Source: Hyalangium minutum | Lineage (GTDB): Bacteria > Myxococcota > Myxococcia > Myxococcales > Myxococcaceae | Assembly (NCBI RefSeq): GCF_000737315.1 | Contig: NZ_JMCB01000024.1 | Coordinates: 1-64,000, forward strand | Length of the DNA stretch: 64,000 nucleotides | Direction of reading: 5' to 3' | Shown: positions 9,595-56,094 of the stretch, one piece after another | Numbering within the stretch: position 1 is the stretch's first letter | Layout: the number at the start of each line of letters is the position of its first letter | Notes under the pieces: model-generated | What the model saw: only the letters and a program-made list of their open reading frames with translations | Told to the model about the DNA's origin: nothing | Database searches by the model: none | Program-made: the position numbers and the translations under genes

Positions 9595-9688
9595 CCAGCG
9601 GGCAAGCAGCCAGCCCTCCCCCCCTGCTCGGTCAGGGGCGAAGGATGGTATGAACTGTCCAGGTCGGGCTGGCTACTCGAGGTCGCTC

Positions 9689-10537: not shown

Positions 10538-10548
10538 AGGGGCTGCCG

Positions 10549-17798: not shown

Positions 17799-17813
17799 AA
17801 GTCGAGGCCTCCC

Positions 17814-18050: not shown

Positions 18051-18073
18051 GGCCTCGGCTGTCCTACACGAAC

Positions 18074-19420
18074 ATGGCTTCTCCTCAGTCCCAGCAGAAC
18101 AAGCTGTTGCGCGTCGGCATCCTCCAGGGTGGGCGCATCCTCGATGAGCGCCACGTGCTGCGCGACGACGTCACCATCGGGCACGACGCCAAGAACACCA
18201 TCGTCCTGCCGCCCTCGGAGGACTTGCCGGCGAAGTTCGCCATCTTCGAGAACCGCAACAACCAGTACCAGCTCGTGTTCGACGACACGATGCAGGGCCG
18301 GGTGAACCTGGGCAGCTCGGATGTGGACTTCGACCGCATCCGCAAGCAGGGACTGGCCCAGGAGCGCGGCACCAACTACGTGCTGCCCCTGCAGGAGACC
18401 GCCCGCGGCAAGGTGGAGCTGGGCGACGTCACCCTCTTCTTCCAGTTCATCACCCCTCCGGCCGCAGCCGACAGGCCGGTGCTCCCGGCGGATGTACAGG
18501 GTGGCTTCTGGAAGTCGATGGACCGCGTGTTCTTCGGCATCCTCGCGGTCTCGCTCTTCCTGCACTTCGCGTGGGGCGCGTACATCGTCTCGCGCGATCC
18601 GCCCCCCGAGCCCGAGCTGGCCCTGGACGAGCTCGAGGACCGGTTCGTCAAGGCGAACATCATCCCGCAGAAGCTCCCGGAGCCGGAGAAGGTGGCCGAG
18701 GCGACTCAGGCCGCCGCCGAGGACTCGGCACCCAAGGAAGAGAAGAAGGCTGCCGCCAGCGACAAGCCGGCCGACTCCAAGCCCCAGGACGCGGCGCAGC
18801 GCAAGGCGGAGATCGCCAAGAAGGTGTCCGGCAAGGGCCTGCTGAAGATCCTCGGCTCGTCGGGCGGCGGCAGCGGCGCGTTCGCGGACGTGCTCGGCGG
18901 CAGCACCGGCGGCAGCGAGATCGCCAACGCGCTGCAGGGCGCTGGCGGCGTGGGCGTCGCCACCAGCGACGCCCTGGGTGCCAGTGGTCCTAAAGGCGGC
19001 GGCGCGGGCAACGTGGCCGGCATCGGCGACCTGGGCACCAGCGGCGGCGGCAAGGTGGACCTCGGCAGCAAGAAGGAAGTCGAGGTGGTGGGCCGCGTGA
19101 AGGACGCCACCCCCGAGGTGGAGAGCTCCGACGTGGATCGCGACGCCCTGGCCCGCTACGTCAAGGCGCGCCTGAAGGCGATCCAGAACTGCTACGAGAA
19201 GGAGCTCAAGCGAAACCCCAGCCTCAAGGGCAAGGTGGTGGTCCGCTTCAACATCATGCCCACCGGCCGCACCGGTGGCATCGAGGTGGAGGAGAACACC
19301 CTGGGCAACGAGGCGGTGGGCAGCTGCATCCGCACCGTCATCCGCAGCTGGGTCTTCCCCTTCAAGCCGGATGACGAGGTGCCCGTCGCCTACCCGTTCG
19401 TCTTCTCTCCCGCGGGGTAG
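18074..19420 (+). CDS. GltG/PglI-like FHA-like, TM and TonB-C (AgmX/PglI C-terminal) protein
   Basis: N-terminal V.IG...KNTIV; single TM FFGILAVSLFLHFAWGAYIV; Gly-rich linker; C-terminal IQNCYEKELKRNPSLKGKVVVRF...C...W.FP. Confidence 0.82.
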   Translation: MASPQSQQNKLLRVGILQGGRILDERHVLRDDVTIGHDAKNTIVLPPSEDLPAKFAIFENRNNQYQLVFDDTMQGRVNLGSSDVDFDRIRKQGLAQERGTNYVLPLQETARGKVELGDVTLFFQFITPPAAADRPVLPADVQGGFWKSMDRVFFGILAVSLFLHFAWGAYIVSRDPPPEPELALDELEDRFVKANIIPQKLPEPEKVAEATQAAAEDSAPKEEKKAAASDKPADSKPQDAAQRKAEIAKKVSGKGLLKILGSSGGGSGAFADVLGGSTGGSEIANALQGAGGVGVATSDALGASGPKGGGAGNVAGIGDLGTSGGGKVDLGSKKEVEVVGRVKDATPEVESSDVDRDALARYVKARLKAIQNCYEKELKRNPSLKGKVVVRFNIMPTGRTGGIEVEENTLGNEAVGSCIRTVIRSWVFPFKPDDEVPVAYPFVFSPAG

Positions 19421-19545
19421 CGCGCAGTGCTGGATCCAAGGGCTGGGCAGTCCGTCTGCCCCTTTGGGCCCCTGGGCTCGCGTTGACACCCCCACGCACC
19501 GCTTCTACGCTCGGAGGTCCTCTTCCCTCCGGGCCGGAGACACGG

Positions 19546-34775: not shown

Positions 34776-34809
34776 TTGACGCGTCAGCTGACGCCCATTG
34801 ACGCGCAAA
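34776..34809. promoter_or_regulatory. Tandem palindromic enhancer boxes (putative sigma54-activator UAS)
   Basis: TTGACGCGTCAG (34776) and TTGACGCGCAAA (34798), starts 22 bp apart; the same boxes recur at 42038-42070. Confidence 0.7.
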
Positions 34810-34857
34810 TGGCCGCCAGATCCCTCCAGCAGTCACGCCCTTCCCCCGAACCTCTCT

Positions 34858-34873
34858 TGGTTCAGGGCTTGCA
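34858..34873 (+). promoter_or_regulatory. Sigma54 (-24/-12) promoter of the Kelch gene
   Basis: TGGTTCAGGGCTTGCA fits GG-N10-GC with TTGCA; 50 bp from the proximal UAS box; RBS GAGGAG and ATG 34918 downstream. Confidence 0.68.
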
Positions 34874-34917
34874 ACCTTGTGTGCGGAATCCCACTCGCAC
34901 CACGAGGAGATTCGACC

Positions 34918-40900: not shown

Positions 40901-41643
40901 AGGGCCTGGCGCACAAGGAGCAAGCTCGGGCCGCATGGGAGCGCGGCGAGGACCCGCTGCCACTGATGGATCAGGCACAACAGGCCTTTGACCAGGCACG
41001 GACCCTCGCCCCTCAGCGGAACTGGGCCTACAACAACCTGGCGGACCTGTCCGCCACCCGGGCCATGTATCTGAGTTCCCGAGGCCAGGATGCCCGGCCC
41101 AGTGCCCGCGCAGCGCTGCAGCTCGCACGCGAGGCCCAGCAGCGCGCGCCCACGCACTACGCGCCGCTGATCGACATGGGGCATGCCTCCCAGCTGCTGG
41201 CAGCCTTCGCCTTGGAGGACGGCGCGGATCCGCGCCCGTATCTCATTGACGCCCTGGAGACCCTCCAACAGGCGCTTGAGCGCTCCCCTGACAATACGGA
41301 GACGTGGCTCTATCTGGCGGAAGCCCGAGCGGTGCAGGCGCAATGGAGCGCACGGCAAGGGCGAGGGGCTGACAAGGATTTCGAGAAGGCCCACAAGGCC
41401 TATCAGCAAGCCATCCTCTCGACGGAACGGCCCCTGGACTACCGCCTGGCCTTTGGCCGCTTCTGCCACACGTGGGCCACCTGGAGAAAACAAGCCGGGC
41501 TTGATGCCTCGGTTCCCCTCGAGCAGGGGCTGTCGCTGGTGAGCGAGGTGTTGAAGGCTCGGCCCGATTGGGCCGAGGCGCTCGCGCTGCGCGCCAGCCT
41601 CGAGGGGCTGCGTCCCCAGTCACAACCGGACGCAGCACCCTAG
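37951..41643 (+). CDS. Membrane Ser/Thr protein kinase with C-terminal TPR region
   Basis: LGQGGMGRVY, VALKF, HRDIKPTN, DFGLAR, GTPHYMAPEQ; TM WALVSVASVALVLVLLALG; long TPR-like helical C-terminus. Start may be 37957. Confidence 0.93.
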   Translation: MPMREKYEQELRVAQMRGVLSQEEAEALITEGLLQGCHPLELLVARGILSEETLDEIRAAAYGTGAPLHAGLKQGETLSFRRPPAEPPARVEEPLTPGSPTRTIQPGTPPAVPPAKPPVPADAPVTPGSPTLTVHPTPSQTTPYPQEPAFPVPGWERYQPVRFLGQGGMGRVYLAYDPVLRRNVALKFVRGDDPELQHRFISEAQAQARVEHERVCKVYEVGEVQGQPFIAMQYVEGCSLLDLIRELSLEQKVMVMQQVTEGVHAAHRAGLIHRDIKPTNILVERGEDGRWKPYVMDFGLARDWQREATVTGTVLGTPHYMAPEQARGEVSQLDRRADVYSLGATLYVMLTGKTPIPGTNALEVLTNLATQEARPLREHNKNVPVDLEAIVLKCLEREPSARYDSARALAEDLGRFLNGEPVQARAVGTWYRLRKKARKHWALVSVASVALVLVLLALGKAELTRRDSAERERLSSHFTKVAGDVEARARFIALSRLHDTRAERQELRTRLGEIERAMGESGEVAQGPGHYALGQGWLDLGDPAKAREHLEAAKAAGYEDPQANVALALAMSQLYNEQLLSLGQLASELRKARREELAVQYREPALNLLRESKNAQVNSSEYMKALLAFYEEHYDEALGQLNSLGERMPWFYEAPKLRGDILHVRALMRWSDGQQTEKEKEQVQADLEEARRSYLRAADTAQSAPEVHCGLARVEWAAVSMALYSNGEVAPHIERALQHLSRALQAAPDHAASWVLQATLYRNLAQSSHLQGQAAEKPLRQAIDSAQKALDLNPSNMEARKELGMDWLELATLHQKINQDPREPLQHALKVFKEFETTQSDYYVYHGLGLIFTKQADYAESLGADSLLHRNEAIKAFQKSVELKDNYEAGWVNLATQYYKRATLPKAPSPKEDLEQAWQALQKSRELDRQNFLVRFQAGRVQLAQAQRLRDSGEDERPALTAALDACREGLAINPRMVELHNLKGLAHKEQARAAWERGEDPLPLMDQAQQAFDQARTLAPQRNWAYNNLADLSATRAMYLSSRGQDARPSARAALQLAREAQQRAPTHYAPLIDMGHASQLLAAFALEDGADPRPYLIDALETLQQALERSPDNTETWLYLAEARAVQAQWSARQGRGADKDFEKAHKAYQQAILSTERPLDYRLAFGRFCHTWATWRKQAGLDASVPLEQGLSLVSEVLKARPDWAEALALRASLEGLRPQSQPDAAP

Positions 41644-42086: not shown

Positions 42087-43664
42087 TCAATTCGAGACCA
42101 GCCCCAGTTCCCGCACACGGCGCTGGAGCGCTCGCAAGGAGACCTCGAGCCGCTGCGACATGAGCTCCAGGTCGCCGTTGCACTCACTGTAGCTCTGACG
42201 AATCTGCTCGACGCTCAGGTCCTTGGCGGTGCGCACCCGGGAGCTCTTCTTCATCAAGTTGTAGAGCGAGGCGCGGGTGATGCCGAGCTGGTTCGAGGCA
42301 GCCGCCAGGTCATAACCGTGCGCACGCAGTGCCCCCATCATCTCCTCCTCGGAGACCTCGGAGGGCTTGCGGCGCGTCTCGGGCAGTGCTTTCGAAGAGG
42401 AAGGCGACGGAGGCGTGGGGGACACCGCAGCCAAGGAAGACAGCTCCTCCTCCAGCCGAGGATCCACATGCAAGCTCGGCAGGCCGCGGCTGCCGATGAC
42501 GAGCTGACGCGTCACGTTGCGCAGCTGGCGGACATTGCCAGGCCACGGGTAGCGCACCAGCCGCGAGGCCAGCGCCGCTGGCAGCCATGGCTCGGCCGAG
42601 GGCTCCGAGGACTCCAGCCGCCAGACCTCTCCGAGGCTCTCCAACTCCTGGCGAGCAAAGTGCAAGAGCAGCAGGCCCAAGTCCTCACGGCGCTCGCGCA
42701 GAGGAGGAACCCGGATCTCGAACCCCGCCAGCCGATGAAGAAGCGGAGCCTTGAACTGCCCCTGCTGGATCTGCTCCTCCAGGTGAGCGTCTGTCGCGGC
42801 CACCAGACGCACCTGCGTCTTCACGGGCGTGCGGGCCCCCACGGGAAACATCTCCCCAGTCTCCAGCACGCGCAGGAGCAGGGCCTGCACCTCCGGAGAG
42901 GCCTCGGCCACCTCGTCCAGAAAGAGGGTGCCGCCCTGGGCCGCGCGGAAGAAGCCCTCGCGGGAGTGCGTGGCGCCCGTGTAGGCCCCACGCTCGGCGC
43001 CAAAGAGCTCGGAGGCGGCCAGCTCCTTGGGCAGGGCTCCCAGGTTCACGCTGATGAAGGGCCCCTTGTGCCGCAGGCCGTGCTGATGAAGCGCCCGGGC
43101 CACCAGCTCCTTGCCGGTGCCTGTCTCGCCCCGGATGAGCACAGGCACGTCCAGGTCCGCCACTTGCATCACCTGCCGGCGAACCCGCCTCACCGCCGCG
43201 CTCTGGCCCACCATGCCCAACTCCTCCCCCCCCTCCTTCTCCGCAGGCTCTACCCAGTGCAGCAGCAGCACCACGCGTTCGGCCAGCTCCAGCGTGACGC
43301 CAGTGACCAGCGCCTGGGTCTCCAGCTCACGCTCTCCCGTGAGCGGCTCACCCTCCACGATGACCTGGGGACTGCTTCCCGCGACGATGCGCACGCCCCC
43401 TTGCTCTCTCGGAAGGAGGCGCAGCGGCTTGCGGCTCAGGAAGGGGTCGGCCAGCGGCAGGCCGACAACGGAGCCCGGGCGCGCGAAGAGAGGCTCCGTG
43501 CGCGAGATGGCGGCCTCCCGGCCCGCCTCGAGCTCGCGCAGCAGCACCCGCTCACCGATGCGCTGGATCTTCGGGTGGGAGATGAGGGTCAACGCTGGAA
43601 CCAGTCCCGGCGCCCCGGGGCCACTGCGGCGCGGGTTCCGGGTGAGCGTGGAGATGTCTTCCAC
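42087..43664 (-). CDS. Sigma54-dependent enhancer-binding protein with FHA-like N-terminus and HTH
   Basis: GETGTGKELVA, SELFG..RGAYTGA, GGTLFLDEV, RLVAATD, WPGNVRQL; tandem C-terminal HTH-like segments; N-terminal ISR...LSR resembles a degenerate FHA; no receiver Asp pocket seen. Start set at GTG 43664 (RBS AAGGGGAGG). Confidence 0.92.
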   Translation of the reverse strand: MEDISTLTRNPRRSGPGAPGLVPALTLISHPKIQRIGERVLLRELEAGREAAISRTEPLFARPGSVVGLPLADPFLSRKPLRLLPREQGGVRIVAGSSPQVIVEGEPLTGERELETQALVTGVTLELAERVVLLLHWVEPAEKEGGEELGMVGQSAAVRRVRRQVMQVADLDVPVLIRGETGTGKELVARALHQHGLRHKGPFISVNLGALPKELAASELFGAERGAYTGATHSREGFFRAAQGGTLFLDEVAEASPEVQALLLRVLETGEMFPVGARTPVKTQVRLVAATDAHLEEQIQQGQFKAPLLHRLAGFEIRVPPLRERREDLGLLLLHFARQELESLGEVWRLESSEPSAEPWLPAALASRLVRYPWPGNVRQLRNVTRQLVIGSRGLPSLHVDPRLEEELSSLAAVSPTPPSPSSSKALPETRRKPSEVSEEEMMGALRAHGYDLAAASNQLGITRASLYNLMKKSSRVRTAKDLSVEQIRQSYSECNGDLELMSQRLEVSLRALQRRVRELGLVSN

Positions 43665-43812
43665 CAAGTGCCCTCCCCTTCGCATGCCTCCGTCGTCCGA
43701 GGCTCCTGCCCAGTACTTCAAGGGACTGAACCCTTCAAGCCCTTGCCGCTCCCCATCCTGGAACCACCTCGAGGACGTGCGCCGCTGGCGCACACGCGTC
43801 AGCGCCGTGTTC

Positions 43813-44715
43813 ATGCTGGCCTGGGCGTTGGCGTGCCTGATGGCGGGACCTGCTTGGGCGGAGGAGGCCACGAACATCGACGTGCCGGAGACGGAAAACC
43901 CATACATCCAGGCGGTAGCCACGCTCTACGGACAGTCCAAGTATGAGGAGGCGTTCTCCAAGCTGGAGAAGGCGCAGGACTGGAAGTCCAACGGGCCGCA
44001 GGAGCAACTGTGGCTCAAGCTGATGCAGGGCGTGCTGCAGGTGGAGCTCGCCCCGGAGGCGGCGCTGCAGACATTCAAGGAAGCGCTGGCGATGGATGAG
44101 CAGGCGCAGCTGCCGGTGAAGAAGGGCTCGCGGCGCTTGCGCAAGCTCTTCGAGCAGGCGCGCAACACGGCGGGGCTCCCGGCGGACCTGGCGCTGGAGG
44201 AGGAACCGGACGAGGCCGACGCGCCCGTGGTGACGGGCCCGCCCGAGCGGCGAATGGGCCTGAGCCTGAGCGTGCGCGGAGAGGTGGATGTGCCAGGACT
44301 GGGCGTCACCCGCTCTATCTCTTCCGTGGTGGGGCTTGGGTACACGAAGGAGCGGATGGGAGGATTGGTGGGAGTCCTGGTGCAGCCCACGCCAGGGCTT
44401 CGGGCCGAGTGGCAGTACCACCCCATCAACCTCGGCTGGGTGCGGCCCTATGCGGGGGTGGGGGCTACGGCGTTCTTCCTGGAGGAGAATGCGGAGGGAA
44501 CAAACACCGTCTTCGGTGGAGTCAGCGGTCGCGGGGTTCTCGGGGTGGATGTCCAGTGGAACTCTCGCATGTTTGTCTTTGCCGACGTGGCGTATGAGCG
44601 CTTCTTTACCGGGGGCGAGCGGTACCGCTCGGAGGCAGTGCTGTTCTCGATAGGCGTGGGCCTGTTCCCCCAGCATCCCAATCCGGTGGGGGCCGGGACG
44701 AACCTCCCCCGCTGA
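43813..44715 (+). CDS. Exported protein: TPR-like N-domain plus small C-terminal beta-barrel (paralog 1)
   Basis: Signal ending AWA-EE; NPYIQAVATLY...YEEA..KLEKA; C-terminal amphipathic strands (VRPYAGVG, GRGVLGVDVQW, VFADVAYE). The start may be slightly upstream. Confidence 0.72.
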   Translation: MLAWALACLMAGPAWAEEATNIDVPETENPYIQAVATLYGQSKYEEAFSKLEKAQDWKSNGPQEQLWLKLMQGVLQVELAPEAALQTFKEALAMDEQAQLPVKKGSRRLRKLFEQARNTAGLPADLALEEEPDEADAPVVTGPPERRMGLSLSVRGEVDVPGLGVTRSISSVVGLGYTKERMGGLVGVLVQPTPGLRAEWQYHPINLGWVRPYAGVGATAFFLEENAEGTNTVFGGVSGRGVLGVDVQWNSRMFVFADVAYERFFTGGERYRSEAVLFSIGVGLFPQHPNPVGAGTNLPR

Positions 44716-44866
44716 GAAGGGGAGCGCTCCCATGAGAGTCAGTCAGCGGTGAAGCGCTTCACCAGCGGCGTATGAGCCCCCTCACTGCGTGGAGGAGGCC
44801 ACAGGTCTACAGAGCCAGTCATGGAGCGCCAGCGCGTGCTCCGTTCCTCCATCCAGGACTGACTCC

Positions 44867-45784
44867 ATGACCTCTGCCTTGAAAATCGCCCTTCTCTGCC
44901 TGACCGCCGTCACCGCGTCCGCCGAAGAGCCCTCGAAGCTCGAGCGGCCGTTCACGCCCAACCCCTACATCCCCGCAGTGGCCACGCTCTATGAGCAAGC
45001 CCGGTACGAGGAGGCCCTCGCCAAGGTGGAGAAGGCTGTGGGCTGGAGATCCAACGAAGTGCAGGAGCTGGTCTGGCTCAAGTTGATGCGGGGCGTGCTG
45101 CTGGCGGAGCAGTCCCCGGAAGCGGCGCTGCAGTCCTTCCGCGAGGCCCTGGCGATGGATGTCTCCGTGCAGCTCCCCGTGAAAGGCCCGAGGCGCTTGC
45201 GCAGGCTCTTCGCGCAGGCCCGCGGCACCCTCGCGCTACCGGACGGTTCGCGGGAGGACGAGGAGGAACTGGAACTGGAAACACCCGCGGTGGCTCGCGA
45301 AGAAGCGGCGGACGGCTCCCCGAGGCAGCTGGGATGGAGCATGAACATTCGTGGAGAGGTGGATGTGCTGGGGCTCGGCGTCACCACGACCGTCACCCCG
45401 GTCGTGAGCATTGGGTACACCCAGGAGCGCGTGGGCGGTCTGCTCGGAGTCGTGGTGCAGTCCTCTCCGGGGCTCAGGGCCGAGGCGCGATTCCATCTCT
45501 CTACCCAGGGCGGTCTGCGCCCCTATGCGGGGCTGGGCACCACGGCCTTCTTCCATGAACTGAACGCACAGAGGACGCCCACCTTCTTCGGCGGAGTCAG
45601 CGGGAGAGGAGTGCTCGGCGTGGAGGTGCAGTGGACCTCGCGTCTGTATGGCTTTGCCGACGTTGCCTACGAGCGCTTCCTGCGGCGCAAGGAGCTGTAC
45701 CGCTCCGACTCGGTGCTGTTCTCGATAGGAGTGGGGTTGCGAGCGTGGGCTTCCCGGGCCTCCTCGAGCGTCTCGCCCAGGTAG
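44867..45784 (+). CDS. Exported TPR-like plus beta-barrel protein (paralog 2), C-terminus altered by overlap
   Basis: Colinear with paralog 1 from NPYI to FSIGVGL; the last 15 codons lie antisense to the neighbouring WD40 gene. Confidence 0.72.
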   Translation: MTSALKIALLCLTAVTASAEEPSKLERPFTPNPYIPAVATLYEQARYEEALAKVEKAVGWRSNEVQELVWLKLMRGVLLAEQSPEAALQSFREALAMDVSVQLPVKGPRRLRRLFAQARGTLALPDGSREDEEELELETPAVAREEAADGSPRQLGWSMNIRGEVDVLGLGVTTTVTPVVSIGYTQERVGGLLGVVVQSSPGLRAEARFHLSTQGGLRPYAGLGTTAFFHELNAQRTPTFFGGVSGRGVLGVEVQWTSRLYGFADVAYERFLRRKELYRSDSVLFSIGVGLRAWASRASSSVSPR

Positions 45785-48700
45785 CGCTGGCGCTGACGGA
45801 GCTCCAGGCTCGCGCTCGTCATCTGGTGCAGCCGCTCGCGCAGCATGTCCACGCCCAGCCTCCACACGCGCGCGGAGCCGTCGCTCGAAGCGATGGCCAG
45901 CATGTCCCCCTTCGCGCTGAAGACTGCTCCCATCACGCGGTCCCCATGGCCGGTCAGCACCAGGGGCTCACCGCTCCCATCCACCGGCCACACCCGCACC
46001 GCCCCATCTCCCGAGGCCGTCACCACCCGCGTGCCTCGGGAATCGAACCGGGCCGTATGTCCCCGGAGCACCACCGGCTCCCCCACTCCCTCCGCGGACC
46101 ACACCCGCGCCGTCTTGTCGTGCGAGGCCGTCAGCACCCGCGTCCCGTCCGGACTGAACTCCGCGCTCACCACCGCCTGCTCGTGCCCCTTGAGCACCAC
46201 CGGCTTGCCTTGGCCATCCGCGCGCCACACCCACGCCGTCCCGTCCTCTGACGCTGTCACCACCCGCTCGCTGTCCGAGCTGAACGCCGCCATCACCACC
46301 CGGCCTTGATGTCCCTGGAGCACCACGGGCGCACCGCTGCCGTCCGCACGCCACACGCGAGCCGTTCCGTCATCCGAGGCCGTCACCACCCGCGCCCCGT
46401 CCGGGCTGAAGGCCGCGCTCCGCAGGAACTCCGTGTGCCCGTGAAGCACCACGGGCTCTCCACTCCCGTCCGCCTGCCACACCCGTGCCGTCCCATCCCA
46501 CGAGGCCGTCACCACCCGCGCCCCGTCCGGGCTGAACACCGCCGTCACCACCCGGCCCGTGTGCCCATAGAGCACCACCGGCTCTCCGCTGCCGTCCGTG
46601 CGCCACACCCGCGCCGTCCCATCCACGGAGGCCGTCAGCACCCGCTCCCCCTCCGGGCTGAAGGACACCATCCTCAATTCCGCCCCATGCCCCTTGAGCA
46701 ACACCTTGGTCATGGAGCCATCCAGCCGCCACACCCGCGCCGTGCCATCCGCATGCGCCGTCGCCAGCAGCTCCCCGCTCGGGCTGAAGGCCAAGCCCTG
46801 CACCGCGCCCGCTCGGCGGCGCAGCGTGAGCGCCTGGGGCTGCGCGCGCCACCGCCACACCCGCGCCGTCCCATCCCGTGAGGCCGTCACCACCTGCTCC
46901 CCATCCGCGCTGAACCGCGCGGACAGCACCTCGTCCCCGTGCCCCAGCAAGTCCAGGGGCAGGCCTTCCCCGTCCGTGCGCCGCACCCGCGCCGTCCCAT
47001 CCCGCGAGGCCGTCACCACCCACATGCCGTCCGGGCTGAAGGCCACCGTGAGGATCTCCCCCGTGTGTCCCGCCAGCCGCATCCCTCCCTTCCCATCCGC
47101 CCGCCACAGGCGCACCGACCCATCCGCGTGCGCGCTCACCACCAGCCCTCCGTCCGGGCTGAAGGCCACCGCGTTCACGAAGCCGGAGTCGCTCTGCAGC
47201 AGAATCGGCTCGCCCTGCTCCTCCACGCGCCACACCCGCACCGCTCCGTCCACCGAGGCCGTGGCCACCCGCGTCCCATCCGGGCTGAAGACCGCGGCGC
47301 GCACATCTCCCGGGTGGCGCAGCACCGCCAGCTCGCCACGCCCATCCGCGTGCCACACCCGCGCCGTCCCATCCCGCGACGCCGTCACCAGCCGCGCGCC
47401 CGTGCCGTCAAAGGCCGCGGCCACTACGCCCTGCTCGTGGCCCCGGAGCACCACCGGCACGCCCATCCCATCCGTGCGCCACACCCGCGCTGTCCCATCC
47501 CGCGACGCTGTCACCACCCGCTCGCCATCCGGGCTGAACGCCACTGCCACCACCTCGCCCACGTGCCCCTCGAGCGGTGCCCCCGGGCCGCCCTCCAACC
47601 ACCACAGCCGGGCCGTGCGGTCCGCCGAGGCCGTCACCACCCGCTTCCCGAGCGGGCTGAAGGCCGCCACCAGCACCTCGCCGCTGTGCCCTTCGAGCAC
47701 CGTGGGCTCGCCCGTCCCATCCGCGCGCCACACCCGCGCTGTTCCATCCCGAGACGCCGTCACCACCCGCGTCCCATCCCGGTTGAACGCCGCGGCGCGC
47801 ACCGGCCCTCGGTGCCCTCGCAGCACCGCGGAGGCGAGTGGCTGCTGCAGCACCTCCAGCGCCGCTTGCGTCCACGCCAGGTGCTGCTCGGGCTCGCGCA
47901 CCTCCAACAGCACCAGCAGGGCCGCCGTGGGGTCCTCCCGCCGCAGCTTGTCCGCCACGATCAGCCGGGCGAAGTCCTGCAGCCGCTCCTGGTGCCGGCG
48001 CGCCTCCCGCGCGAGCCGCTCCTCCCGCTCCCGGCTCGCGTTGATGAACGGGAACACCCGCTCGTCCAGCTCGTCCGGATGGGCAAGCAGGAACTCCAGC
48101 GCCTCCTCCAGGCGCCGGCCTCGCAAGAGATAGTCCTCCGCGTGCTCCGCCCCCTGGTGGTCACCCCAGGCCTCCGCCGCCACGCGCAGCTCCAGCCGCC
48201 TGCGCCGGCGCTCCTGGCCCTCGCGGATCCACTCCGCCAGGGGCCCCCAATGGCGCAGCAACGCCTCGTGGGCCACTTCGATGAAGACCTCGCCCTCCTC
48301 CTCCGCGCCGCCGCCGAGCACCAGCACCCGGCCCTCCACCAGCCGCCCCAGCGCCGTGTCGAAGGCGCGGCGCGCCTGCTCCCCCATGGGCCGCACCCGC
48401 TCCCTCTCCACGCGCTGGCAGGTGAAGGGGGCTGACCCCTCCCGCACATCCACCAGTTCCACCAGCAGCCGACGCACCTGGTGGCGCTCCTCCTCGCCCA
48501 GCCCCAGGAACAGCCGGTCCAGTTCCTGGGCCAGCGCTCCGGCCACCCCGCCCAGCGCCCGGTACGCGCTGTGCTTGAGCCATCGCCCCTCGCGCATCCG
48601 CCACAGCCGCTCCAGCGTGTGCGCCAGCAGCGGAAGGCCGCCCGGCTGGCGCTCCACTTCCTGCAGGAGCCGCTCCGTCAGGCCCTCCTCCAGCGAGAGC

Positions 48701-50379
48701 CCTTGCTGCCACGCGGGACGCTCGATGGCGTCGCGCAGCTCCTCCGCCGTCATCTCCGGCACCAGCAGCAGGCGCCCGCCCTCGAAGAGCACCGCGTCCA
48801 ATCGGGGACCGCCCTCCCCCAAGCGCACCTCCGCGCAGCGCCCCAGGTAGTCCACCCGCAGCGTGGCGAGCACCACCGTGCCCCGCGTGGGCTCCTGCGA
48901 GGCCTCCCATAGCGCGCGCAGCAGCTCTCCGCGCTCGCCCTCGGCCAGCCGCGTGAAGGCCTCGTCCAGTGGATCCACCACCAGGAGCCGGTGCTTGCCC
49001 GGAGACGCCCGCGCCGAGCGCACCACCTCCAGCGCTCCCGCCTCTCCCGCGCGTACCCGGGTCACCTCCCAGCGCTCGGGAGACAGCTCCGGCAACAGCC
49101 CGGCCCGAAGCAGCGAGGACTTGCCACTCCCGGAGGCGCCGGCCATCACCACCAAGGCAGGGGCCCGTCCTTCCGCAGCGGCCTCCACCCGCTGGTGCAG
49201 TGTCTGGCGCAGCGCCTCACGGCCGAAGAAGCGCCGATGATCCCCCGGCTCGAATGGCCGCAGGCCGCAGTACGGCGGGAAGATGAACGGGCGCAGGTCC
49301 GGCCCATCTCCGGCGTGGGCGTAGAGCTGGAGCGAGGCTCCATCCATCCGCGCCCCCTCGAGCCGCAGCGCCTTGCGAGCCTCGGCCAGCGCCTGCTCCA
49401 GCGATACGTGGTGTCCGAGCAGCTCCCCATAGAGCACACGGGTGAAGGTGACGGAGCCCACCTTGGAGAGCGGCAGCCGGGAGGCAACCACCGTGGAGAG
49501 CCCCGCGCGGTGCAGCTCGCGGGCCGGGCTGCCCAGGTGGTTGCCGGGGAGCCCCGCATCCCCTCCGCGGCAGGCGCACAGCACCACCATGCGGACATGC
49601 CCGGCGTGCGGTTCAAGCACGGCGCGCAGCGAGGCGGCATCCACCACCTCCCCCTCTCCCTCCATTCGAGAGGAGTTCCAGGCCAGGCCGTAGGCCCCGG
49701 GCTCGGAGGGAACGCCATGGCACAGCAGGTGGAGCGCGCCGATGGGCTCCTCACTGTCCCTCAAGGCCTGCTCGAGCGAGGCGAGGCTCACATGAGGAAG
49801 CACGTCCCGGCTCGGATCGAAGCGGTACCCTGCCTGGGCGCAGACCTCCACGAGGGCGCGCTGGTGTGCCGCTGCGGGCACATCCCCCGCCCAGGCGAAG
49901 AGGATGCGGCCCCCCGCAGGCGGAGGCGAGGGCTGCGCCGGGTGGGTCTGCGTCCCGGGCCGCTCGTAGCAGAGCGTCAGGCCGTCGAGATCACTCAGAG
50001 CCTGGCCCGTGGACTCCAGCGTGAGCAGCTCCCAAGGGAGCACGCACAGCTCGGCAGGCTCCAGCCTCAGCGTGAGCCGCACGAGCCTCCCCGCCTCCAC
50101 GGCCTGCCGCAGGCGCTGCTCGTCCTGGGCCCACCCCAGAGGCGCGAGGAAAGCACGCAGCAGCTCTCCCAGCCGCTGGGCGGCATTGGGGCTGGGGCGG
50201 CTGGAGCCCAGGTTGGACAGATCCTCCAGGGCTCGCTCCCAGGGGAACGAGGCGCGCACGGAGGTGCCCTCCTCTCGGAGGCGCAGGTAGTCCCGCGCCT
50301 GGAAGAGGAACCGGTCGGCGTCGCGGGTGCGCTCGCCGGAGACCAAGTGCAGCGTCAGCTCCAGGGGGCTTGGGGCCAC
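45667..50379 (-). CDS. CHAT protease, nSTAND1-type NTPase and WD40 (16 repeats) NLR-like protein
   Basis: CHAT: [19 protein letters not shown]; PYCGLRPF....FFGRE; Walker [17 protein letters not shown]; [10 protein letters not shown]; [10 protein letters not shown]; [12 protein letters not shown]; 16 GH...AFSPDG.RVVTAS.DGTARVW repeats. Confidence 0.92.
45860..47835 (-). repeat. WD40 tandem array (~126-bp period), 16 units
   Basis: Recurrent DNA unit CCACACCCGCGCCGTCCCATCC...GAGGCCGTCACCACCCGC...CCGTCCGGGCTGAA; unit 15 lacks about 5 codons. Confidence 0.9.
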
Positions 50380-50397
50380 AGGGTGCGCGCTCCCGGC

Positions 50398-51951
50398 TCA
50401 GCTCGTGGTGAGGCGCTCGCGGAAGTAGCGCCGGTACAGCTCGCAGCGAGGCAGCATCGTGGTTCCCTCCTGCCGTACCAGCCCCGCGCTCCGCAGGCGG
50501 ATGAACACGTCCTCGTCCGGGTGTGCGCCGCGCTGCAGCACCTCGCGAAAGCCAGCCTTGAGCTGCGGCTGGCCGCCCAGCCGGAAGAGCAGGTGCCGCA
50601 AGTGGTCTCCAAACGGGCCTCGGTCCTCCGCCGCTTGGGAGAACAGGTCCTCCACACGCATGCTCCGGCTGGCCACCAGGTAGAGCGCCTTGCGCACCAG
50701 ATAGGGATGTCCGCCCAGCAAGGCGAAGAGCTCTTGCTCCTGCTTGGGCCCCAGCGGCGAGCCATGCCGCCGGTTCAGCTCGGCCACCTGCTCCGGGGTG
50801 AAGTCTCCCAGCTCCACCGTCTGCCCCACGTTGAAGGGCGACTGCGTCAGGTTCTTGATGAAGAGGAAGGGCTCGGTCGAGGTGACGAGGACGATGCTGA
50901 GCTTCTTCCACACGGGCGTGGTGGGCAGCGCGCGGTTGTTGTGCCAGCTGCGCAGCATGCCGAAGAAGTCCGTGCCGAAGGGCGTCTCGAAGAGCGTCTC
51001 CACCTCGTCCAGCCCCAGCACCAGCGGGGCCTCCAGCGCCTTGAGGATGTGTCCGCTCATGTATAGGCCGCAGCGCTGGCTCAGGCCCATGGGCTTCTGC
51101 CAGTAGGCATCCACCTGGTTGGACAGCTCGAGCTGATCCCCCAGCGAGGTGCAGAAGCGCTGGAAGAAGAGATCCGGGTTGGAGAACGTGGCCGAGTCGA
51201 ACTCCTGGAACGAGAGGTAGGCCACGCGCTTGCCCGCGGTGATGGCGCCAGCCAAGCCTCGCATGAGCAGGGAGCTCTTGCCCATCTGCCGGGCGCCCTT
51301 GATGGTGACGGTGGTGCCCTGCTTCTGCGAGACAGCCTTCATCACCGTCGCATCGGCATCGCGCACCACATAGAAGGCCGACTGCGTGTCCATGGCCCCT
51401 TCGAGCGGCTCATCCAGCTCGAGCGCCGCGGACGGCAGAGGCGCCTGAAAGGCAGTGGCGGCGGCGGCAGGCGCGGGCTCGGGCGCCGCACTGGCCCGGG
51501 GAGGGCTCGCGGGAGTCGAGGCGGAGCCCGGCAACGTCCCCCCGCTCATGGCCTTGGCGAGCTGCTCGAGCAGGCGCGGAGTGTCCTCGGGCCCCTCCCA
51601 GAGCGCCCAGTTGATGGGGCTGAGGTACCCGCCCAGCGGCGGCGGCAGGCGCTCGTGGTAGGCGACCCGGATGGGTAGCAGCACCGGGCGCCCGCGCTGC
51701 ACCTGGAGCTGGTGCGCCAGCTCGATCTCCGTGCGGGCCATCTCGCTGTTGACGGAGAAGGGGGACAGCAGCGCGATGAAGAAGTCCGCTTGGCGGATCT
51801 CCGCGTCGATGCGCTCCACCCACTTCTCACCCACGAGCATGGAAGTGTCGATGAACACCTCGTGGTCGACCTTGAGCGCCTTGTAGAGGGCATTGGCAAG
51901 GTCTTGATCGGGCGTGACGTCGCGCTTGTAACTGATGAAGACACGGGCCAT
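50398..51951 (-). CDS. TIR-domain plus AAA-like (AAA_35-type) NTPase protein
   Basis: TIR: RVFISYKR, VFID, FFIALLS..S..SEM.RTEIE; FYVVRDAD; Walker A GARQMGKSSL; Walker B LGLDEVE; SPFNVG; GGHPYL; RCELYRRYF. Confidence 0.92.
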   Translation of the reverse strand: MARVFISYKRDVTPDQDLANALYKALKVDHEVFIDTSMLVGEKWVERIDAEIRQADFFIALLSPFSVNSEMARTEIELAHQLQVQRGRPVLLPIRVAYHERLPPPLGGYLSPINWALWEGPEDTPRLLEQLAKAMSGGTLPGSASTPASPPRASAAPEPAPAAAATAFQAPLPSAALELDEPLEGAMDTQSAFYVVRDADATVMKAVSQKQGTTVTIKGARQMGKSSLLMRGLAGAITAGKRVAYLSFQEFDSATFSNPDLFFQRFCTSLGDQLELSNQVDAYWQKPMGLSQRCGLYMSGHILKALEAPLVLGLDEVETLFETPFGTDFFGMLRSWHNNRALPTTPVWKKLSIVLVTSTEPFLFIKNLTQSPFNVGQTVELGDFTPEQVAELNRRHGSPLGPKQEQELFALLGGHPYLVRKALYLVASRSMRVEDLFSQAAEDRGPFGDHLRHLLFRLGGQPQLKAGFREVLQRGAHPDEDVFIRLRSAGLVRQEGTTMLPRCELYRRYFRERLTTS

Positions 51952-51977
51952 GGGTCTCTTTCCTGGCGTCCCGGAAC

Positions 51978-54900
51978 TCAGGGCAGGTTAGGGCAAGCCT
52001 TCCGATAGGGTGCAACCTTGCTCACATCCGCAGGCCACTCCTGACGCGTCAAGTTGCGAGGCAACAAGGCGCAGGTGAGATCGATCCAATCCTGGGAGCG
52101 CACCGGCCACAGGCGCGCGGTCTCGTCCTCGCTGGCGGTGGCCACGCGCGAGCCATCCGGGCTGAAGGCCACGGCCAGGACACGGCTCCGGTGGGGCATG
52201 CGCGCAAGCCGGCGCCCCGTGGTGGCCTCCCACAAGCGCGCCGAGCCGTCCTCACTGGCCGTGACCACGAGCGTGCCATCCGGGCTGAAGGCCACGGACG
52301 TCACACTGCTGTCGTGCTGCAGCAGCTGGCGCTGCTGGCCGGTGGCCACGTCCCAAAGGCGGGCAGTGCTGTCCTCGCTGGCCGTGGCCAGGAGCGTGCC
52401 ATCCGGGCTGAACACCACCGCAGTGACGACGAGCTCGTGCTGCAGGACTTTGCCCAGGGATTCGCCGGTGGCCGCGTTCCACAGGCGTGCGGTGCCATCC
52501 TCGCTGGCGGTGGCCAGGAGCCTGCCATCCGGGCTGAAGGCCACGGCCCGGACACCGGCCGCGTGCCGGAGGGGCCGGCCCCTGAGCTCGCCGCTGGCCG
52601 TGTTCCACAGGCGCACCGTGTCGTCATCGCTGGCAGTGGCCAGATGTGTGCCATCGGGGCTGAAGGCCACGGAGCGGATCGCCGCCTTGTGCGAGAAGGG
52701 CGGGCTCAGGGACTCGCCGGTGGACGCATTCCACAGGCGTGCCGTGCCATCCTCGCTGGCGGTGGCCACGCGCGTCCCGTCCGGACTGAACACCACCGCC
52801 GTCACCGGCTTGTTCGTGTCATGGGTGAACCGCCGGCCTCGCTGCCCGGTGGCCTCGTCCCAGAGCGTGGCCTGGTTGCCGCTGGTGGTGGCCATGCGCG
52901 TGCCGTTCGGGCTGAATGCCAGCGCGGTGACCGCTGCGCCATGCGGCAGGAGCACGAGCGGAGAACGAGGGGCGATCTGCCAGAGCCGGGCACGCTGGTC
53001 CTCGCTGGCCGTGGCCAAGGTCTTGCCGTCCGGGCTGATCGCCACGGAGTTGACGGTGTCCTGATGAGGCAGGAGCACCTGCTGCTTGCCGGTGGCCACA
53101 TCCCACAGGCGCGCGGTCTTGTCCTCGCTGGCTGTCGCCACGCTCTTGCCGTCGGCGCTGAAGGCCACGGCCGTGACGGCTTTGTCGTGAGCCAGCACCA
53201 TGGGGGAGAAGTCGCCCGCCACTTCCCACAGGCGCGCGGCTCTGTCCTCACTGGCCGTCGCCACGAGCGTGTTATCCGGGCTGAAGGCCACTGACAGCAC
53301 ACGGCCCATGTGCTGCAGCACGGAGAGCCGCTTGCCCGTGGCCACGTCCCACACACGCGCCGTCCGGTCATTGCTCGCCGAGGCCATTCGCGTGCCATCA
53401 GGGCTGAACGCCACGGCCGTGACACGGTCCCGGTGCGTCATCGCCTTGGCAAAGGACACCTCGGCGCCAGTGGCCGTGTTCCACAGGCGCACGGTGCGAT
53501 CGTCACACCCGGTGAGCAGCAGCTTGCCGTCGGGGCTGAAGGCCACGGCATTGACGGGGTAGTGGTGCTGAAGGGGAGCGCCCAGGGGCTGGCCGGTGGC
53601 CGCGTTCCACAGGCGTGCGGTGCCATCCTCGCTGGCGGTGGCCACACGTGAGCCATCCGAGTTGAAGGCCACGGCCGTGACGGGCTTGTTGTGAGAGAGC
53701 TTCAGGCGCTGGCGGCCCGTGGCCACCTCCCAGAGCCGGGCAGTTCCGTCTTCACTGGCGGACAGGGCCAAGCTGCCATCCGGGCTGAAGGTGACGGCCA
53801 GGACGTTGTCATCATGAGCCAGAGGGACCGGGTCCGAGCGAAGCTGGACGAGCGCGCGGATCAGCGAGTCCATGGCTCCCGCCGAGGAGGGATAGAGCCG
53901 CAAGGCCTCCGTGGAGAACGCGGCGCTGACAGGCAAGGCCGAGGAGGCGGCACGCAGCGTGTCATCCGCCCGGTTCAGGAACACATACGAGGCGGCTTCC
54001 TTGAACTTCTCCTCGGCCTCGGCTCGGGCGCGAGCGCTTTCCCGCTCGACCTGTTCCTTTTGCGCCAAGGCCTGCTGTGCCTCCGCCTGCAGCCGCTGTG
54101 CCTCCGTGCGAGCGGTCTCCGCCTCTTGCTTCGCCTTCTCCGCTTCTTCCTTCGCCTTGGTGGCATCCGCCTGGAGTACCTGCGTCTCCCGCTGGGCTTG
54201 AGCTACGCTCTTTTGTGCCTCCTCTTTGATGCTGCTGGCCTCTTTTTCTGCCCGGCCTTTGGCTGACTCGGCATCCTCCCTGAGTTTCTGCGCCCGCCCC
54301 AGCTCCTCGCGAACCGCATCGGCATCGCGCTCCGCAGCCGCCAACTGCCGGTATAGGAGCACCGAGGCCGGCAGCAGCACGATGAAGCCCAGGATCACCA
54401 ACCCCAGCGCCGCCAGCCGCACCACGCGCCAGTCCACCGGCAACTGGCTGCGCGCCCACGCCACCGTGAAGACCCGGTCGTAGATGGCGTTGCGCACCCG
54501 CAGCACCTGGCCCTCGCGCCGCACCACCCCCGCGAGCTTGAGGTGCGCCTTGACCAGCGACCGCTCCTCATCGGCCACCCGACGGCCACGCCGGATGTCC
54601 TGATACGTCCGCAGCACCCGCTCGGGCTCCGGCGCGCGCCGCGTCAGCATGTCGCGCACGAACACCAGGTTGTTGTCCTGGAAGCTCTTCTCCGCGAAGA
54701 ACGTTCGCTCCACCACCTGCTGCACGTCCTGACGCGCCCAGGCGCCCCCACCGTTCTGCTGCTTGTGGTCCACCAGCGCCTGGCACAGCCGCTGCGTCAG
54801 GTACGGGTGCCCGCCCGTCCACCCCAGCACCCACTCCAGCACCTGCCTCCCCTGCTCGGGCCCGTCCCCCAACCCCTGCGCCAGCGGCCTCGCCTCCTCC

Positions 54901-55523
54901 AACGTGAAGTCCGTCAGCTCCACCCGCTGGCCCAGGTTGAAGGGCGTGCGCTTCTCGTCCTGGATGAGGTCTCCCGGCGTGGCCACGCCCACGAGCACGA
55001 AAGACAGACGCGCCAGCTCCGGGTTGCTCGCGCGCGCGTTATAGAGGTAGCGAATGGCCGCGTAGAAGTCGTCCGTGAAGCCCATCCCCAGCGTGGTGTC
55101 GATCTCATCGACAAACACCACCACGCGCCCGGGGACCTCCTGGAGCACCACCTCTTCCAGGAAGCGCGTCATCCGCTGCACCGGGCCCTGGTCCCGGTTG
55201 CGGTTCCACCACTCGGCCGAGTCCGTGTTCAGCTCGAGCTGCTCCTGGATGACGACCAGCAGGCCCACGTACCACTGGTCCGCCGTCACCTGCTTGCCAA
55301 TGCGCGTCAGGTCAATGATGACCGAGCGGATGCCCTCTTCGTAGAGCTGCTCCGCGGTGCGCACCATCAGGCTGGACTTGCCCATCTGACGCGCCGTCAG
55401 CACAAAGGCAAACGTGCCCGCGCGGCACAGCGAGAGCATCTCCGGGTCCGCCCGGCGGGCCAGGTACACGCCTCCGCCCGCCTGCACCGTTCCACCCACT
55501 GTGTACAAGCTGGCGTCGCTCAC
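51978..55523 (-). CDS. AAA_35-type NTPase, TM helix, coiled coil and WD40 (14 repeats) protein
   Basis: YTVGGTV...YLARRAD; TARQMGKSSL; VFVDEID; TPFNLG; GGHPYLTQ; hydrophobic LAALGLVILGFIVLLPASVLLY; Ala/Glu/Lys coiled coil; 14 H...[22 protein letters not shown] repeats; RNLT..EW tail. Start set at GTG 55523. Confidence 0.9.
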   Translation of the reverse strand: MSDASLYTVGGTVQAGGGVYLARRADPEMLSLCRAGTFAFVLTARQMGKSSLMVRTAEQLYEEGIRSVIIDLTRIGKQVTADQWYVGLLVVIQEQLELNTDSAEWWNRNRDQGPVQRMTRFLEEVVLQEVPGRVVVFVDEIDTTLGMGFTDDFYAAIRYLYNARASNPELARLSFVLVGVATPGDLIQDEKRTPFNLGQRVELTDFTLEEARPLAQGLGDGPEQGRQVLEWVLGWTGGHPYLTQRLCQALVDHKQQNGGGAWARQDVQQVVERTFFAEKSFQDNNLVFVRDMLTRRAPEPERVLRTYQDIRRGRRVADEERSLVKAHLKLAGVVRREGQVLRVRNAIYDRVFTVAWARSQLPVDWRVVRLAALGLVILGFIVLLPASVLLYRQLAAAERDADAVREELGRAQKLREDAESAKGRAEKEASSIKEEAQKSVAQAQRETQVLQADATKAKEEAEKAKQEAETARTEAQRLQAEAQQALAQKEQVERESARARAEAEEKFKEAASYVFLNRADDTLRAASSALPVSAAFSTEALRLYPSSAGAMDSLIRALVQLRSDPVPLAHDDNVLAVTFSPDGSLALSASEDGTARLWEVATGRQRLKLSHNKPVTAVAFNSDGSRVATASEDGTARLWNAATGQPLGAPLQHHYPVNAVAFSPDGKLLLTGCDDRTVRLWNTATGAEVSFAKAMTHRDRVTAVAFSPDGTRMASASNDRTARVWDVATGKRLSVLQHMGRVLSVAFSPDNTLVATASEDRAARLWEVAGDFSPMVLAHDKAVTAVAFSADGKSVATASEDKTARLWDVATGKQQVLLPHQDTVNSVAISPDGKTLATASEDQRARLWQIAPRSPLVLLPHGAAVTALAFSPNGTRMATTSGNQATLWDEATGQRGRRFTHDTNKPVTAVVFSPDGTRVATASEDGTARLWNASTGESLSPPFSHKAAIRSVAFSPDGTHLATASDDDTVRLWNTASGELRGRPLRHAAGVRAVAFSPDGRLLATASEDGTARLWNAATGESLGKVLQHELVVTAVVFSPDGTLLATASEDSTARLWDVATGQQRQLLQHDSSVTSVAFSPDGTLVVTASEDGSARLWEATTGRRLARMPHRSRVLAVAFSPDGSRVATASEDETARLWPVRSQDWIDLTCALLPRNLTRQEWPADVSKVAPYRKACPNLP
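52100..53830 (-). repeat. WD40 tandem array, 14 units, some nearly identical at DNA level
   Basis: TTCCACAGGCGTGC(G/C)GTGCCATCCTCGCTGGCGGTGGCCA recurs near 52477, 52730 and 53604. Confidence 0.88.
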
Positions 55524-55611: not shown

Positions 55612-56094
55612 TCACTCCGCCGAGCGAATCTGCTCCACGAAGCGCTGCGCCGCCGAGGGCTCCACGCTGTGAGTGCGGGCCAGGTCCTTGGCGATGGTCT
55701 CCGGCGCGTCCCCCGAACGAAGCAGCATGCGCACATTGTGCTCGAAAGGACCGAGGAGCTTCTGCGCCTCGTCCCCCGTGGCCACCGTGGCGCGGGAGTC
55801 CTCGCGCGGCCGGGCCCGCCCCAGCTCGCTCTGCGCCCGCAGGTAGGTGAGCAGGTTCGAGACCAGGAAGTACCAGGTCATGAAGAACGAGATCATCCCC
55901 CACCACCCCAGCGTCACGTTCCGCAACGTGTGGTGCCAGAACGCGCGCTTCAGGCAGCTCCGGCAGAGCTGCCCCTCCGTGGAGTACTCCTGCCGCATGA
56001 GCAGCAGTCCCACGTTGTGATGCAGCTCCACATACGCTGAAGGTTCCGCCTGAAGACAGGAGTCACATCGCATGGCCGCCGGAACATAGCTCAC
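55612..56094 (-). CDS. Small membrane protein with zinc-finger-like CxxC...CxxC
   Basis: CDSC and CRSC flanking a beta segment, then TM GWWGMISFFMTWYFLV. The start may be at the MRCD ATG. Confidence 0.65.
   Translation of the reverse strand: MSYVPAAMRCDSCLQAEPSAYVELHHNVGLLLMRQEYSTEGQLCRSCLKRAFWHHTLRNVTLGWWGMISFFMTWYFLVSNLLTYLRAQSELGRARPREDSRATVATGDEAQKLLGPFEHNVRMLLRSGDAPETIAKDLARTHSVEPSAAQRFVEQIRSAE

Follow-up and report, generated by a model that had tools for sequence, protein, structure and literature searches.

Here we describe three genes from the myxobacterium Hyalangium minutum that probably form a conflict or regulated-cell-death module and are probably transcribed together. They lie on a 64,000-nucleotide (nt) stretch of its genome (RefSeq assembly GCF_000737315.1, contig NZ_JMCB01000024.1, positions 1 to 64,000 of the forward strand; "the window" below). 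The open reading frame (ORF) listing and translation place the three genes co-oriented on the minus strand at 45667-55523, in the order A (AAA_35-TM-WD40, in which TM is a transmembrane helix), B (TIR-AAA_35) and C (CHAT-nSTAND1-WD40) (Table 1). Comparison with homologous loci divides the locus into two units. A and B appear as an old pair of paralogous nucleoside triphosphatase (NTPase) genes found in five phyla, and C appears as a lineage-specific addition made in myxobacteria. We read the locus as a split, paired receptor like the eukaryotic nucleotide-binding, leucine-rich-repeat receptors (NLRs), formed by A and B, plus an added caspase-like arm, C, together serving conflict or cell death; this reading as a whole is about as likely to be right as wrong.

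The pair A-B is the most widespread part of the locus. A search with B returned more than 5,000 related protein clusters. When a single genome of each GTDB species was scanned, 429 loci came up, and the best 80 of these were compared by tblastn with the domains of the window. An A-type AAA_35 gene adjoins the TIR-AAA_35 gene in 75 of the 76 loci having enough flank. These neighbours are 50-66% identical to the NTPase of A and only about 27% to that of B. The pair was found in about 63 cyanobacterial, 3 Chloroflexota, 5 Acidobacteriota, 1 KSB1 and 7 Myxococcota loci, and in one metagenome-assembled genome (MAG) labelled Heliobacteriaceae. Outside myxobacteria the gene order is mostly B then A, with the two genes abutting or overlapping (six loci are divergent), and the A-then-B order is seen in myxobacteria only. 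The NTPase modules of A and B align with an hhalign probability of 100% (E 5e-38), and by this comparison they are paralogous. Their distance matrices covary as well (r 0.82; 0 of 999 permutations), which is expected if the pair travels and diversifies as a unit. The layout is that of a sensor and its helper: the paralogous NTPase genes are adjacent, A carries only a sensor and, at the window locus, no effector, and B carries only an effector, with no sensor domain seen on B in the set examined. A literature search, which covered few subscription journals, found no paper describing the pair.

In B, the putative catalytic residue of the TIR domain, Glu75 (codon 51727-51729), is invariant in 19 homologs and stands in the S-x5-E position, which is typical of TIR NADases. 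The best solved-structure match of this domain is the CRISPR-associated TIR Cat1. The AAA_35 module (PF14516) scores 354 bits in B and 109 bits in A against a gathering cut-off of 27. Walker A GARQMGKSS (GKSS) and Walker B LDEVE (DE) are invariant among homologs of B, and the corresponding motifs of A are ARQMGKSS (GKSS) and VFVDEID (VDE).

Structural models were made with AlphaFold2 (AF2) and compared by Foldseek. The model of B, with a mean predicted local distance difference test (pLDDT) score of 79, matched the plant TIR-NLR RPP1 resistosome first, followed by Avs3, the archaeal Walker ATPase PAB2304, Orc1/Cdc6, the Dark apoptosome and Roq1. For A, a model of residues 1-620 (mean pLDDT 77, reaching 80-95 over the AAA_35 module) matched ORC2/Cdc6, RuvB, Avs3/4 and the human apoptosome. 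As a test of STAND or NLR membership the result is broad, in that ORC/Cdc6 and RuvB score as well as RPP1, Avs3/4, Dark and the apoptosome. On these models, the AAA_35 module is an ORC/Cdc6-like or STAND-like AAA+ NTPase with a C-terminal winged helix. On the structural matches, B would in effect be a TIR-NLR without a sensor and A an NLR-like NTPase without an effector. AAA_35 may be the Npun2340/2341 family, to judge by its two-gene name and by Leipe et al. 2004. Kaur et al. 2021 (PMC8195603) mention an "MNS clade (Npun2340/2341 family)" among the STAND NTPases.

A is predicted to be a transmembrane receptor. In nearly all A-type homologs, across phyla, one strongly hydrophobic 19-mer follows the NTPase, at about aa 360-465 (mostly 370-430) and with a mean Kyte-Doolittle value of 2.2. 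The net charge of its flanks is +1.56 N-terminally and -0.45 C-terminally, and in 58 of the 60 informative proteins the N-terminal flank is the more positive one, which fits a cytoplasmic NTPase and an external C-terminus. The stalk that follows is a coiled coil with weak TolA-like and ATP-synthase-b-like NCBIfam matches, and its predicted helix looks like a periplasm-spanning stalk. WD40 repeats are present on 37 of 47 complete A-type C-termini. In the A-type proteins of loci L028, L061 and L079, CHASE2 takes the position of WD40 (Pfam E 1e-56 to 1e-66). In transmembrane receptors, CHASE2 serves as a sensor module outside the cytoplasm, and its replacement of WD40 gives independent support for an outward-facing sensor on A. 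Among orthologs, the NTPase of A is 83-92% identical, the stalk 42-58% and the WD40 region 49-65%; we count the fast divergence of WD40 relative to the NTPase toward a sensor role and an extracytoplasmic C-terminus. With its single TM helix, its positive-inside bias and CHASE2 in the homologous position, A would be a bitopic inner-membrane protein, its NTPase in the cytoplasm and its stalk and two WD40 propellers outside.

The CHASE2 variants are of Nostoc type (L028 6632-7900, L061 12666-13817, L079 12714-13961) and have further TM helices after CHASE2. The A-type proteins of L035 and L063 resemble them by TM pattern and flanking sequence. Another variation of A comes from Cystobacter fuscus DSM 2262 (L083), in which A is tandemly duplicated (2710-6258 and 6398-9952) upstream of one B and one C. 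Between the copies, identity is 98.6% for the NTPase, against 70% for the TM region, 80% for the stalk and 85% for WD40 (as low as 74-77% in places within the second propeller), as would be expected where a number of diversifying sensors feed a single helper.

C has the full organization of a STAND protein: it matches nSTAND1 (PF20703), has intact Walker motifs (Walker A GASGSGKS at aa 414, Walker B LLVVD at aa 465) and shows the effector-NTPase-repeat layout. The putative catalytic His220 and Cys270 were placed by eye against the GHG and NAC motifs of the CHAT alignment, and the PADLOC model SAVED_CHAT matches with E 1e-33 over the CHAT part only. Orthologs of C are 1556-1566 aa long, with a WD40 region 74-82% identical, compared with 49-65% for that of A. 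They directly follow B in 11 of 11 loci, from Archangium, Cystobacter, Hyalangium, Myxococcus sp., Corallococcus, several MAGs and one soil contig; wherever the ends of both genes are readable, 3-30 nt separate them. A-B-C is complete in eight of them (L001-L004, L006, L081-L083), and three contigs that end there contain B-C alone (L005, L007, L086). A metagenome scan for C orthologs gave one locus, so the co-occurrence counts for C remain small. The flanks upstream of the trio differ completely between genera, and the downstream flank is partly conserved (a convergent gene of no known family, a sigma-54 activator and a kinase of the Ser/Thr kinase (STK)-TPR type). The recurrence of A-B-C despite the differing upstream flanks indicates that the three genes are not adjacent by chance.

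Outside Myxococcota, an nSTAND1 gene lies within 10 kb of the pair in only 2 of 73 loci (L037, L069), which places C outside the ancestral pair; C is, as far as these loci tell, a myxobacterial, lineage-specific addition. The association of TIR-AAA_35 with a CHAT protease is wider. All 27 scanned N-terminal extensions of B in other phyla are short CHAT domains with His and Cys motifs, and CHAT is fused to B, or split just upstream of it, in about 29 of the 73 non-myxobacterial loci. CHAT is also found in the neighbourhood of 10 of 10 scanned myxobacterial loci, plus L086. Some B homologs have a protein kinase or trypsin domain in place of the N-terminal CHAT. By this comparison, a caspase-like protease joined TIR-AAA_35 at least twice independently, by fusion and, in myxobacteria, by adjacency. 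Of the evidence available, this repeated attachment argues most strongly that NADase and protease are paired for function and not by accident, although it shows no cascade.

Some loci depart from the usual arrangement of the pair. For example, the locus of Oscillochloris sp. (L029, 1140-3953 and 3946-7158) has CHAT on both partners: B carries a 434-aa N-terminal CHAT extension, and the A-type protein ends in CHAT, not WD40. In an Anaerolineales MAG (L008, 11364-13535), the A-type partner shows no clear TM helix and carries a protein kinase domain at its C-terminus. Scytonema sp. HK-05 (L069) is the sole full-flank locus without an A partner; it contains a lone CHAT-TIR-AAA_35 gene at 9518-11491 and, about 5 kb downstream, a separate CHAT + nSTAND1-like gene at 16870-19436. 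A pair of CHAT-TIR-AAA_35 and AAA_35-TM-WD40 genes is located on a large cyanobacterial plasmid, plasmid1 of Nostoc carneum NIES-2107 (L046, 9341-16108).

The features of the locus are summarized in Table 1. The longest ORF of gene A extends to 55736; we take the GTG at 55523 as its start, in agreement with the ortholog N-termini MSDxxLYTVGG. Codon-position GC is consistent with all three reading frames, and the catalytic and nucleotide-binding motifs are intact in A, B and C. A single 9.9-kb A-B-C transcript is plausible from the gene spacing. A scan for promoters and terminators found no promoter and terminators at chance level only, a scan that is uninformative at a GC content of 68-70%.

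Table 1. Coordinates of the three genes, their junctions and their domains in the window
Feature	Position	Strand	Description
Gene A, 1181 aa	51978..55523	-	AAA_35 NTPase, one TM helix, long helical stalk, 14 WD40 repeats; proposed transmembrane sensor
A: AAA_35 module, aa 13-352	54468..55487	-	Pfam E 2e-31; proposed cytoplasmic
A: single TM helix, aa 365-392	54348..54431	-	hydrophobic segment, AF2 helix
A: stalk, aa 404-516	53976..54314	-	one predicted helix of ~113 residues (AF2), Ala/Glu/Lys/Gln-rich
A: WD40 array, 14 repeats (~two propellers)	52089..53807	-	Pfam WD40 E 3e-149, 14 stretches; proposed extracytoplasmic sensor
A-B junction, 26 nt	51952..51977	-	purine-rich motif AGGAAAGAG, like a ribosome-binding site, just before the ATG of B
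Gene B, 517 aa	50398..51951	-	TIR, disordered Pro/Ala linker, AAA_35; proposed sensor-less helper and effector
B: TIR domain, aa 4-120	51592..51942	-	Pfam TIR_2 E 3e-20
B: AAA_35 module, aa 184-512	50416..51402	-	Pfam E 6e-106
B-C junction, 18 nt	50380..50397	-	purine-rich motif GGGAG, like a ribosome-binding site, ahead of the GTG of C
Gene C, 1570 aa	45667..50379	-	CHAT, nSTAND1, 15 WD40 repeats; single-chain STAND receptor with caspase-like effector
C: CHAT caspase-like protease, aa 90-340	49360..50112	-	Pfam CHAT E 6e-16; putative His220/Cys270 dyad
C: nSTAND1 NTPase, aa 369-742	48154..49275	-	Pfam PF20703 E 1e-85, 289 bits vs cut-off 27.1
C: WD40 array, ~15 repeats	45880..47829	-	Pfam, 15 stretches; presumed cytoplasmic sensor

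The WD40 arrays are also visible as tandem repeats in the DNA. Tandem Repeats Finder gives a period of 126 nt in C (46061-47793; 13.8 copies, 66% matches), and 126-nt repeats occur in A at 52107-52801 (5.6 copies, 72% matches). At 66-72% likeness in DNA, the repeats of A and C fall short of the extreme internal conservation seen in fungal HET-type repeats. The WD40 array of C coincides with the strongest GC-skew excursion of the window (-0.28 at 46-48 kb).

We class the locus with the NLR/STAND-type conflict systems that have TIR and caspase-like effectors, and no named system matches it. PADLOC 2.0 gave domain-level TIR, CHAT and WD40 matches for A, B and C and no system; its Avs models, of families described up to 2023, matched none of the three, and NCBIfam gave only sub-threshold Thoeris, retron-TIR and FxsC matches. 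An earlier note on this DNA, made from the letters alone, had described three co-oriented genes with these domains, separated by 26 and 18 bp and falling in no named defence system that it recognised. The ORFs, Pfam and the PADLOC and NCBIfam searches agree with it, and C adjoins B in all 11 related loci. What it had missed is that the locus is no single invention of three inseparable parts, as the A-B pair in five phyla and the stand-alone paralogues of C show.

The closest resemblance of A-B is to paired NLRs, such as NAIP/NLRC4 of animals and, in plants, RRS1/RPS4-type pairs and sensor/helper TIR-NLRs. As in these, paralogous nucleotide-binding oligomerisation modules divide sensor and effector between them, the genes are adjacent, and the sensor copy (here A) can be duplicated and diverged. 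The differences are that the module here is AAA_35, not NACHT or NB-ARC, that A is predicted to span the membrane, with a sensor that is probably extracytoplasmic, and that hetero-oligomerisation is here our proposal. Toll-like receptors and PknB-type one-pass receptor kinases share with the locus an external repeat or ligand domain, one TM helix, a cytoplasmic signalling module and a TIR output; however, the TIR here is on the partner B and the cytoplasmic module of A is an AAA+ NTPase, so the likeness is one of analogy. C has the effector-NTPase-repeat layout of Avs/AVAST and other single-chain STAND proteins, and Avs3/4 are among the structural matches of A and B, whereas A/B split these parts over two proteins and across the membrane.

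In the census of Lee et al. 2026 (PMC13581612), caspase-like-STAND-WD40 proteins are called "bacterial Apaf-1 orthologues", and caspase-like and TIR effectors and WD40 sensors are listed; its abstract and phylogeny section, and a search of it by term, give no mention of a split or transmembrane STAND receptor. C differs from these Apaf-1-like proteins (AP-ATPases) in its nSTAND1 NTPase, and NB-ARC is not among the Pfam matches of its N-terminal 856 aa. The name nSTAND1 comes from Kaur et al. 2021, whose conflict systems resemble the present locus in phyletic pattern (cyanobacteria, Chloroflexota and myxobacteria), in effectors (TIR, caspase-like, kinase and trypsin) and in the NTPase of C. The vWA-MoxR-VMAP ternary systems of Kaur et al. 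(PMC7159879) differ, as no vWA, MoxR, VMAP, EAD or Death-like adaptor parts exist here. A system of the VMAP, EAD or Death-like adaptor type was rejected, since A, B, C and their neighbours contain none of these domains.

The proposed mechanism begins at the propellers of A, which would sense a cue in the envelope or outside the cell. The stalk and TM helix would relay the signal to the NTPase of A, and activated A would then nucleate nucleotide-dependent hetero-oligomerisation with B through their paralogous NTPase modules. The TIR domains of B, once clustered, would cleave NAD+, either depleting it or making a signal. C, with a cytoplasmic sensor of its own, would contribute a protease arm that is either set off separately by a ligand in the cytoplasm or brought in by A/B. 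The affected cell would in the end stop growing or die. We infer the A-B hetero-oligomerisation, the activation of the TIR domains, the coupling of A/B to C and the biological trigger. The sensor of A is most likely external and that of C internal, as the earlier note had suggested, calling that of A possibly external; the charge bias, CHASE2 and the AF2 model all favour it. Its further idea, that TIR signalling and CHAT proteolysis are coupled, gains comparative support as a link through the 27 CHAT extensions of B. The cascade it had drawn, from a TIR signal to CHAT, has no specific support and was read too far; C carries no recognisable nucleotide-sensing domain.

Several points weigh against the proposal of a paired receptor with a coupled arm. 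Simple co-inheritance would equally lead A and B to covary, and their covariation does not prove contact. The Walker motifs are intact in both NTPases, leaving no obvious P-loop asymmetry between sensor and helper. No solved structure was found to match AAA_35 or CHAT-nSTAND1 by sequence, and the literature yielded no experimental study of any AAA_35 protein. The A-B-C adjacency is seen in one related genus group only (Myxococcaceae/Archangiaceae), in which relatedness and partly conserved downstream synteny mean that vertical inheritance could explain it. A surrounding defence island was rejected, because the neighbours match PADLOC only at the level of generic kinases and sigma-54 AAA proteins. 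The topology of A is a prediction throughout, the AF2 confidence over its TM helix and stalk is moderate (pLDDT 50-86), and WD40 propellers of its sequence type are usually cytoplasmic.

An alternative view is that the hydrophobic segment of A is a mere anchor or does not span the membrane, so that both WD40 sensors are cytoplasmic and A is a membrane-tethered intracellular receptor. The repeats of A and C are of the same FSPDG...D.TARLW type and 40% identical, those of C being presumably cytoplasmic, and periplasmic WD40 propellers are rare. However, A has only one hydrophobic helix and its ATP-dependent N-terminal module must be cytoplasmic, a long stalk helix follows the TM helix, and both the charge bias in 58 of 60 proteins and the replacement of WD40 by CHASE2 with further TM helices speak against a cytoplasmic WD40 in A; we hold this view to be quite unlikely. 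Greater weight belongs to the explanation that the locus packs together two independent systems, the A-B module and an autonomous C, with co-transcription only coordinating their expression. C is complete enough to act alone; its paralogues, 43-46% identical and carrying WD40 or TPR sensors, are common in Myxococcota, and the two that were checked stand alone among unrelated or housekeeping genes. At 71 of the 73 loci outside Myxococcota, in turn, the 10 kb around the pair are free of nSTAND1 genes, and no adaptor domain is common to C and to A or B. Against this stand the invariable abutment of C and B under differing upstream flanks and the independent fusion of CHAT to TIR-AAA_35 in other phyla, which argues that protease and TIR outputs were selected together; we consider the explanation possible but somewhat unlikely.

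A direct relay between the two effectors, in which a TIR-derived nucleotide made by B activates the caspase-like protease of C, is highly unlikely. Experiments have established such a relay, by N7-cADPR, for type IV Thoeris (Rousset et al., bioRxiv 10.1101/2024.10.24.620036), in which genes for a TIR and a caspase-family protease share one operon, as the TIR and CHAT genes are adjacent here, and a similar cell-suicide logic would be expected. But the TIR of type IV Thoeris is short and not described as fused to an NTPase, whereas that of B sits on a 330-aa AAA_35 NTPase and the protease of C on an nSTAND1 NTPase with a WD40 repeat sensor. There is no sign here of a diffusible signal or signal-binding domain: no SAVED, SLOG, Macro or other known nucleotide-sensing domain was found in C, whose SAVED_CHAT match is confined to CHAT. 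TIRs within STAND/Avs proteins are, moreover, treated as NAD+-depleting effectors and not as signal producers, and the Thoeris match in NCBIfam reached 27 bits against a cut-off of 220. The module could also serve something other than anti-phage defence: kin discrimination or allorecognition, or the programmed cell death of developing fruiting bodies. An external sensor on A might take its cue from neighbouring cells, the family occurs mainly in filamentous or social bacteria (cyanobacteria, Chloroflexota, Myxococcota), and the locus lies outside any recognisable defence island. Yet no polymorphic toxin, immunity or TraA-like genes are nearby, and TIR, CHAT and STAND domains are established anti-phage parts, so that we hold a role of this kind to be unlikely. 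The allorecognition role offered in the earlier note went beyond the evidence, as nothing here tells it apart from defence against phages or from cell death in development.

The proteins of the window are closest to those of Archangium, Cystobacter, Hyalangium, Myxococcus and Corallococcus. Apart from the three genes, the window is unremarkable chromosome for a myxobacterium, with genes for Ser/Thr kinases, TPR proteins, a Mur ligase, a Kelch/Big_13 protein, a sigma-54 activator, a GAF histidine kinase, a glyoxalase and sugar-modifying enzymes. The Kelch/Big_13 gene (34798-37872, plus strand), the STK-TPR kinase gene (37951-41643, plus strand) and the sigma-54 activator gene (42087-43922, minus strand) recur near the trio in L001, L002, L081 and L082, giving the partly conserved downstream synteny. 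Convergent to C are two tandem paralogous ORFs on the plus strand (43951-44715 and 44789-45784) with no Pfam or PADLOC match, the second of which overlaps the 3' end of C by 118 nt. Both match one region downstream of C in L001, and in L082 their place is taken by one convergent 285-aa gene without a Pfam match. On the other side, 88 nt upstream of A, a 153-aa ORF (55612-56073, minus strand) contains CxxC...CxxC motifs and a hydrophobic segment. It was rejected as a fourth member, with no homolog in 86 loci (best E 0.61) and no Pfam or PADLOC match, and it is probably outside the system, though possibly sharing its promoter.

To our knowledge, the characterised bacterial STAND/NLR-like receptors are cytosolic single chains that bind phage proteins inside the cell. 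The present locus may show two features undescribed for bacterial STAND proteins, namely paired sensor and effector NTPases and a membrane-spanning, outward-facing sensor, the latter of which would permit detection before or at genome entry, or of neighbouring cells. The division of labour between A and B would be the principle that also underlies NAIP/NLRC4 and plant helper NLRs. In its boldest form, which is tentative and which we regard as rather doubtful, the proposal makes A/B the first "outside-in" NLR-like immune receptor, in which a periplasmic WD40 (or CHASE2) sensor, wired through one TM helix to an AAA+/STAND-type NTPase, detects a cue and nucleates a paralogous TIR (often CHAT) helper inside the cell, with the myxobacterial C as a coupled caspase-like executioner. 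If true, phage adsorption, an envelope breach or a foreign cell surface would be detectable cues, the logic would be a prokaryotic hybrid of Toll-like receptors and sensor/helper NLRs, and such receptors would exist in genomes of cyanobacteria, Chloroflexota, Acidobacteriota and myxobacteria by the thousand. As a very large, uncharacterised family concentrated in multicellular or social bacteria, it offers much to a single experimental demonstration, which would annotate thousands of genes and would bear on how TIR, caspase-like and NLR modules first combined.

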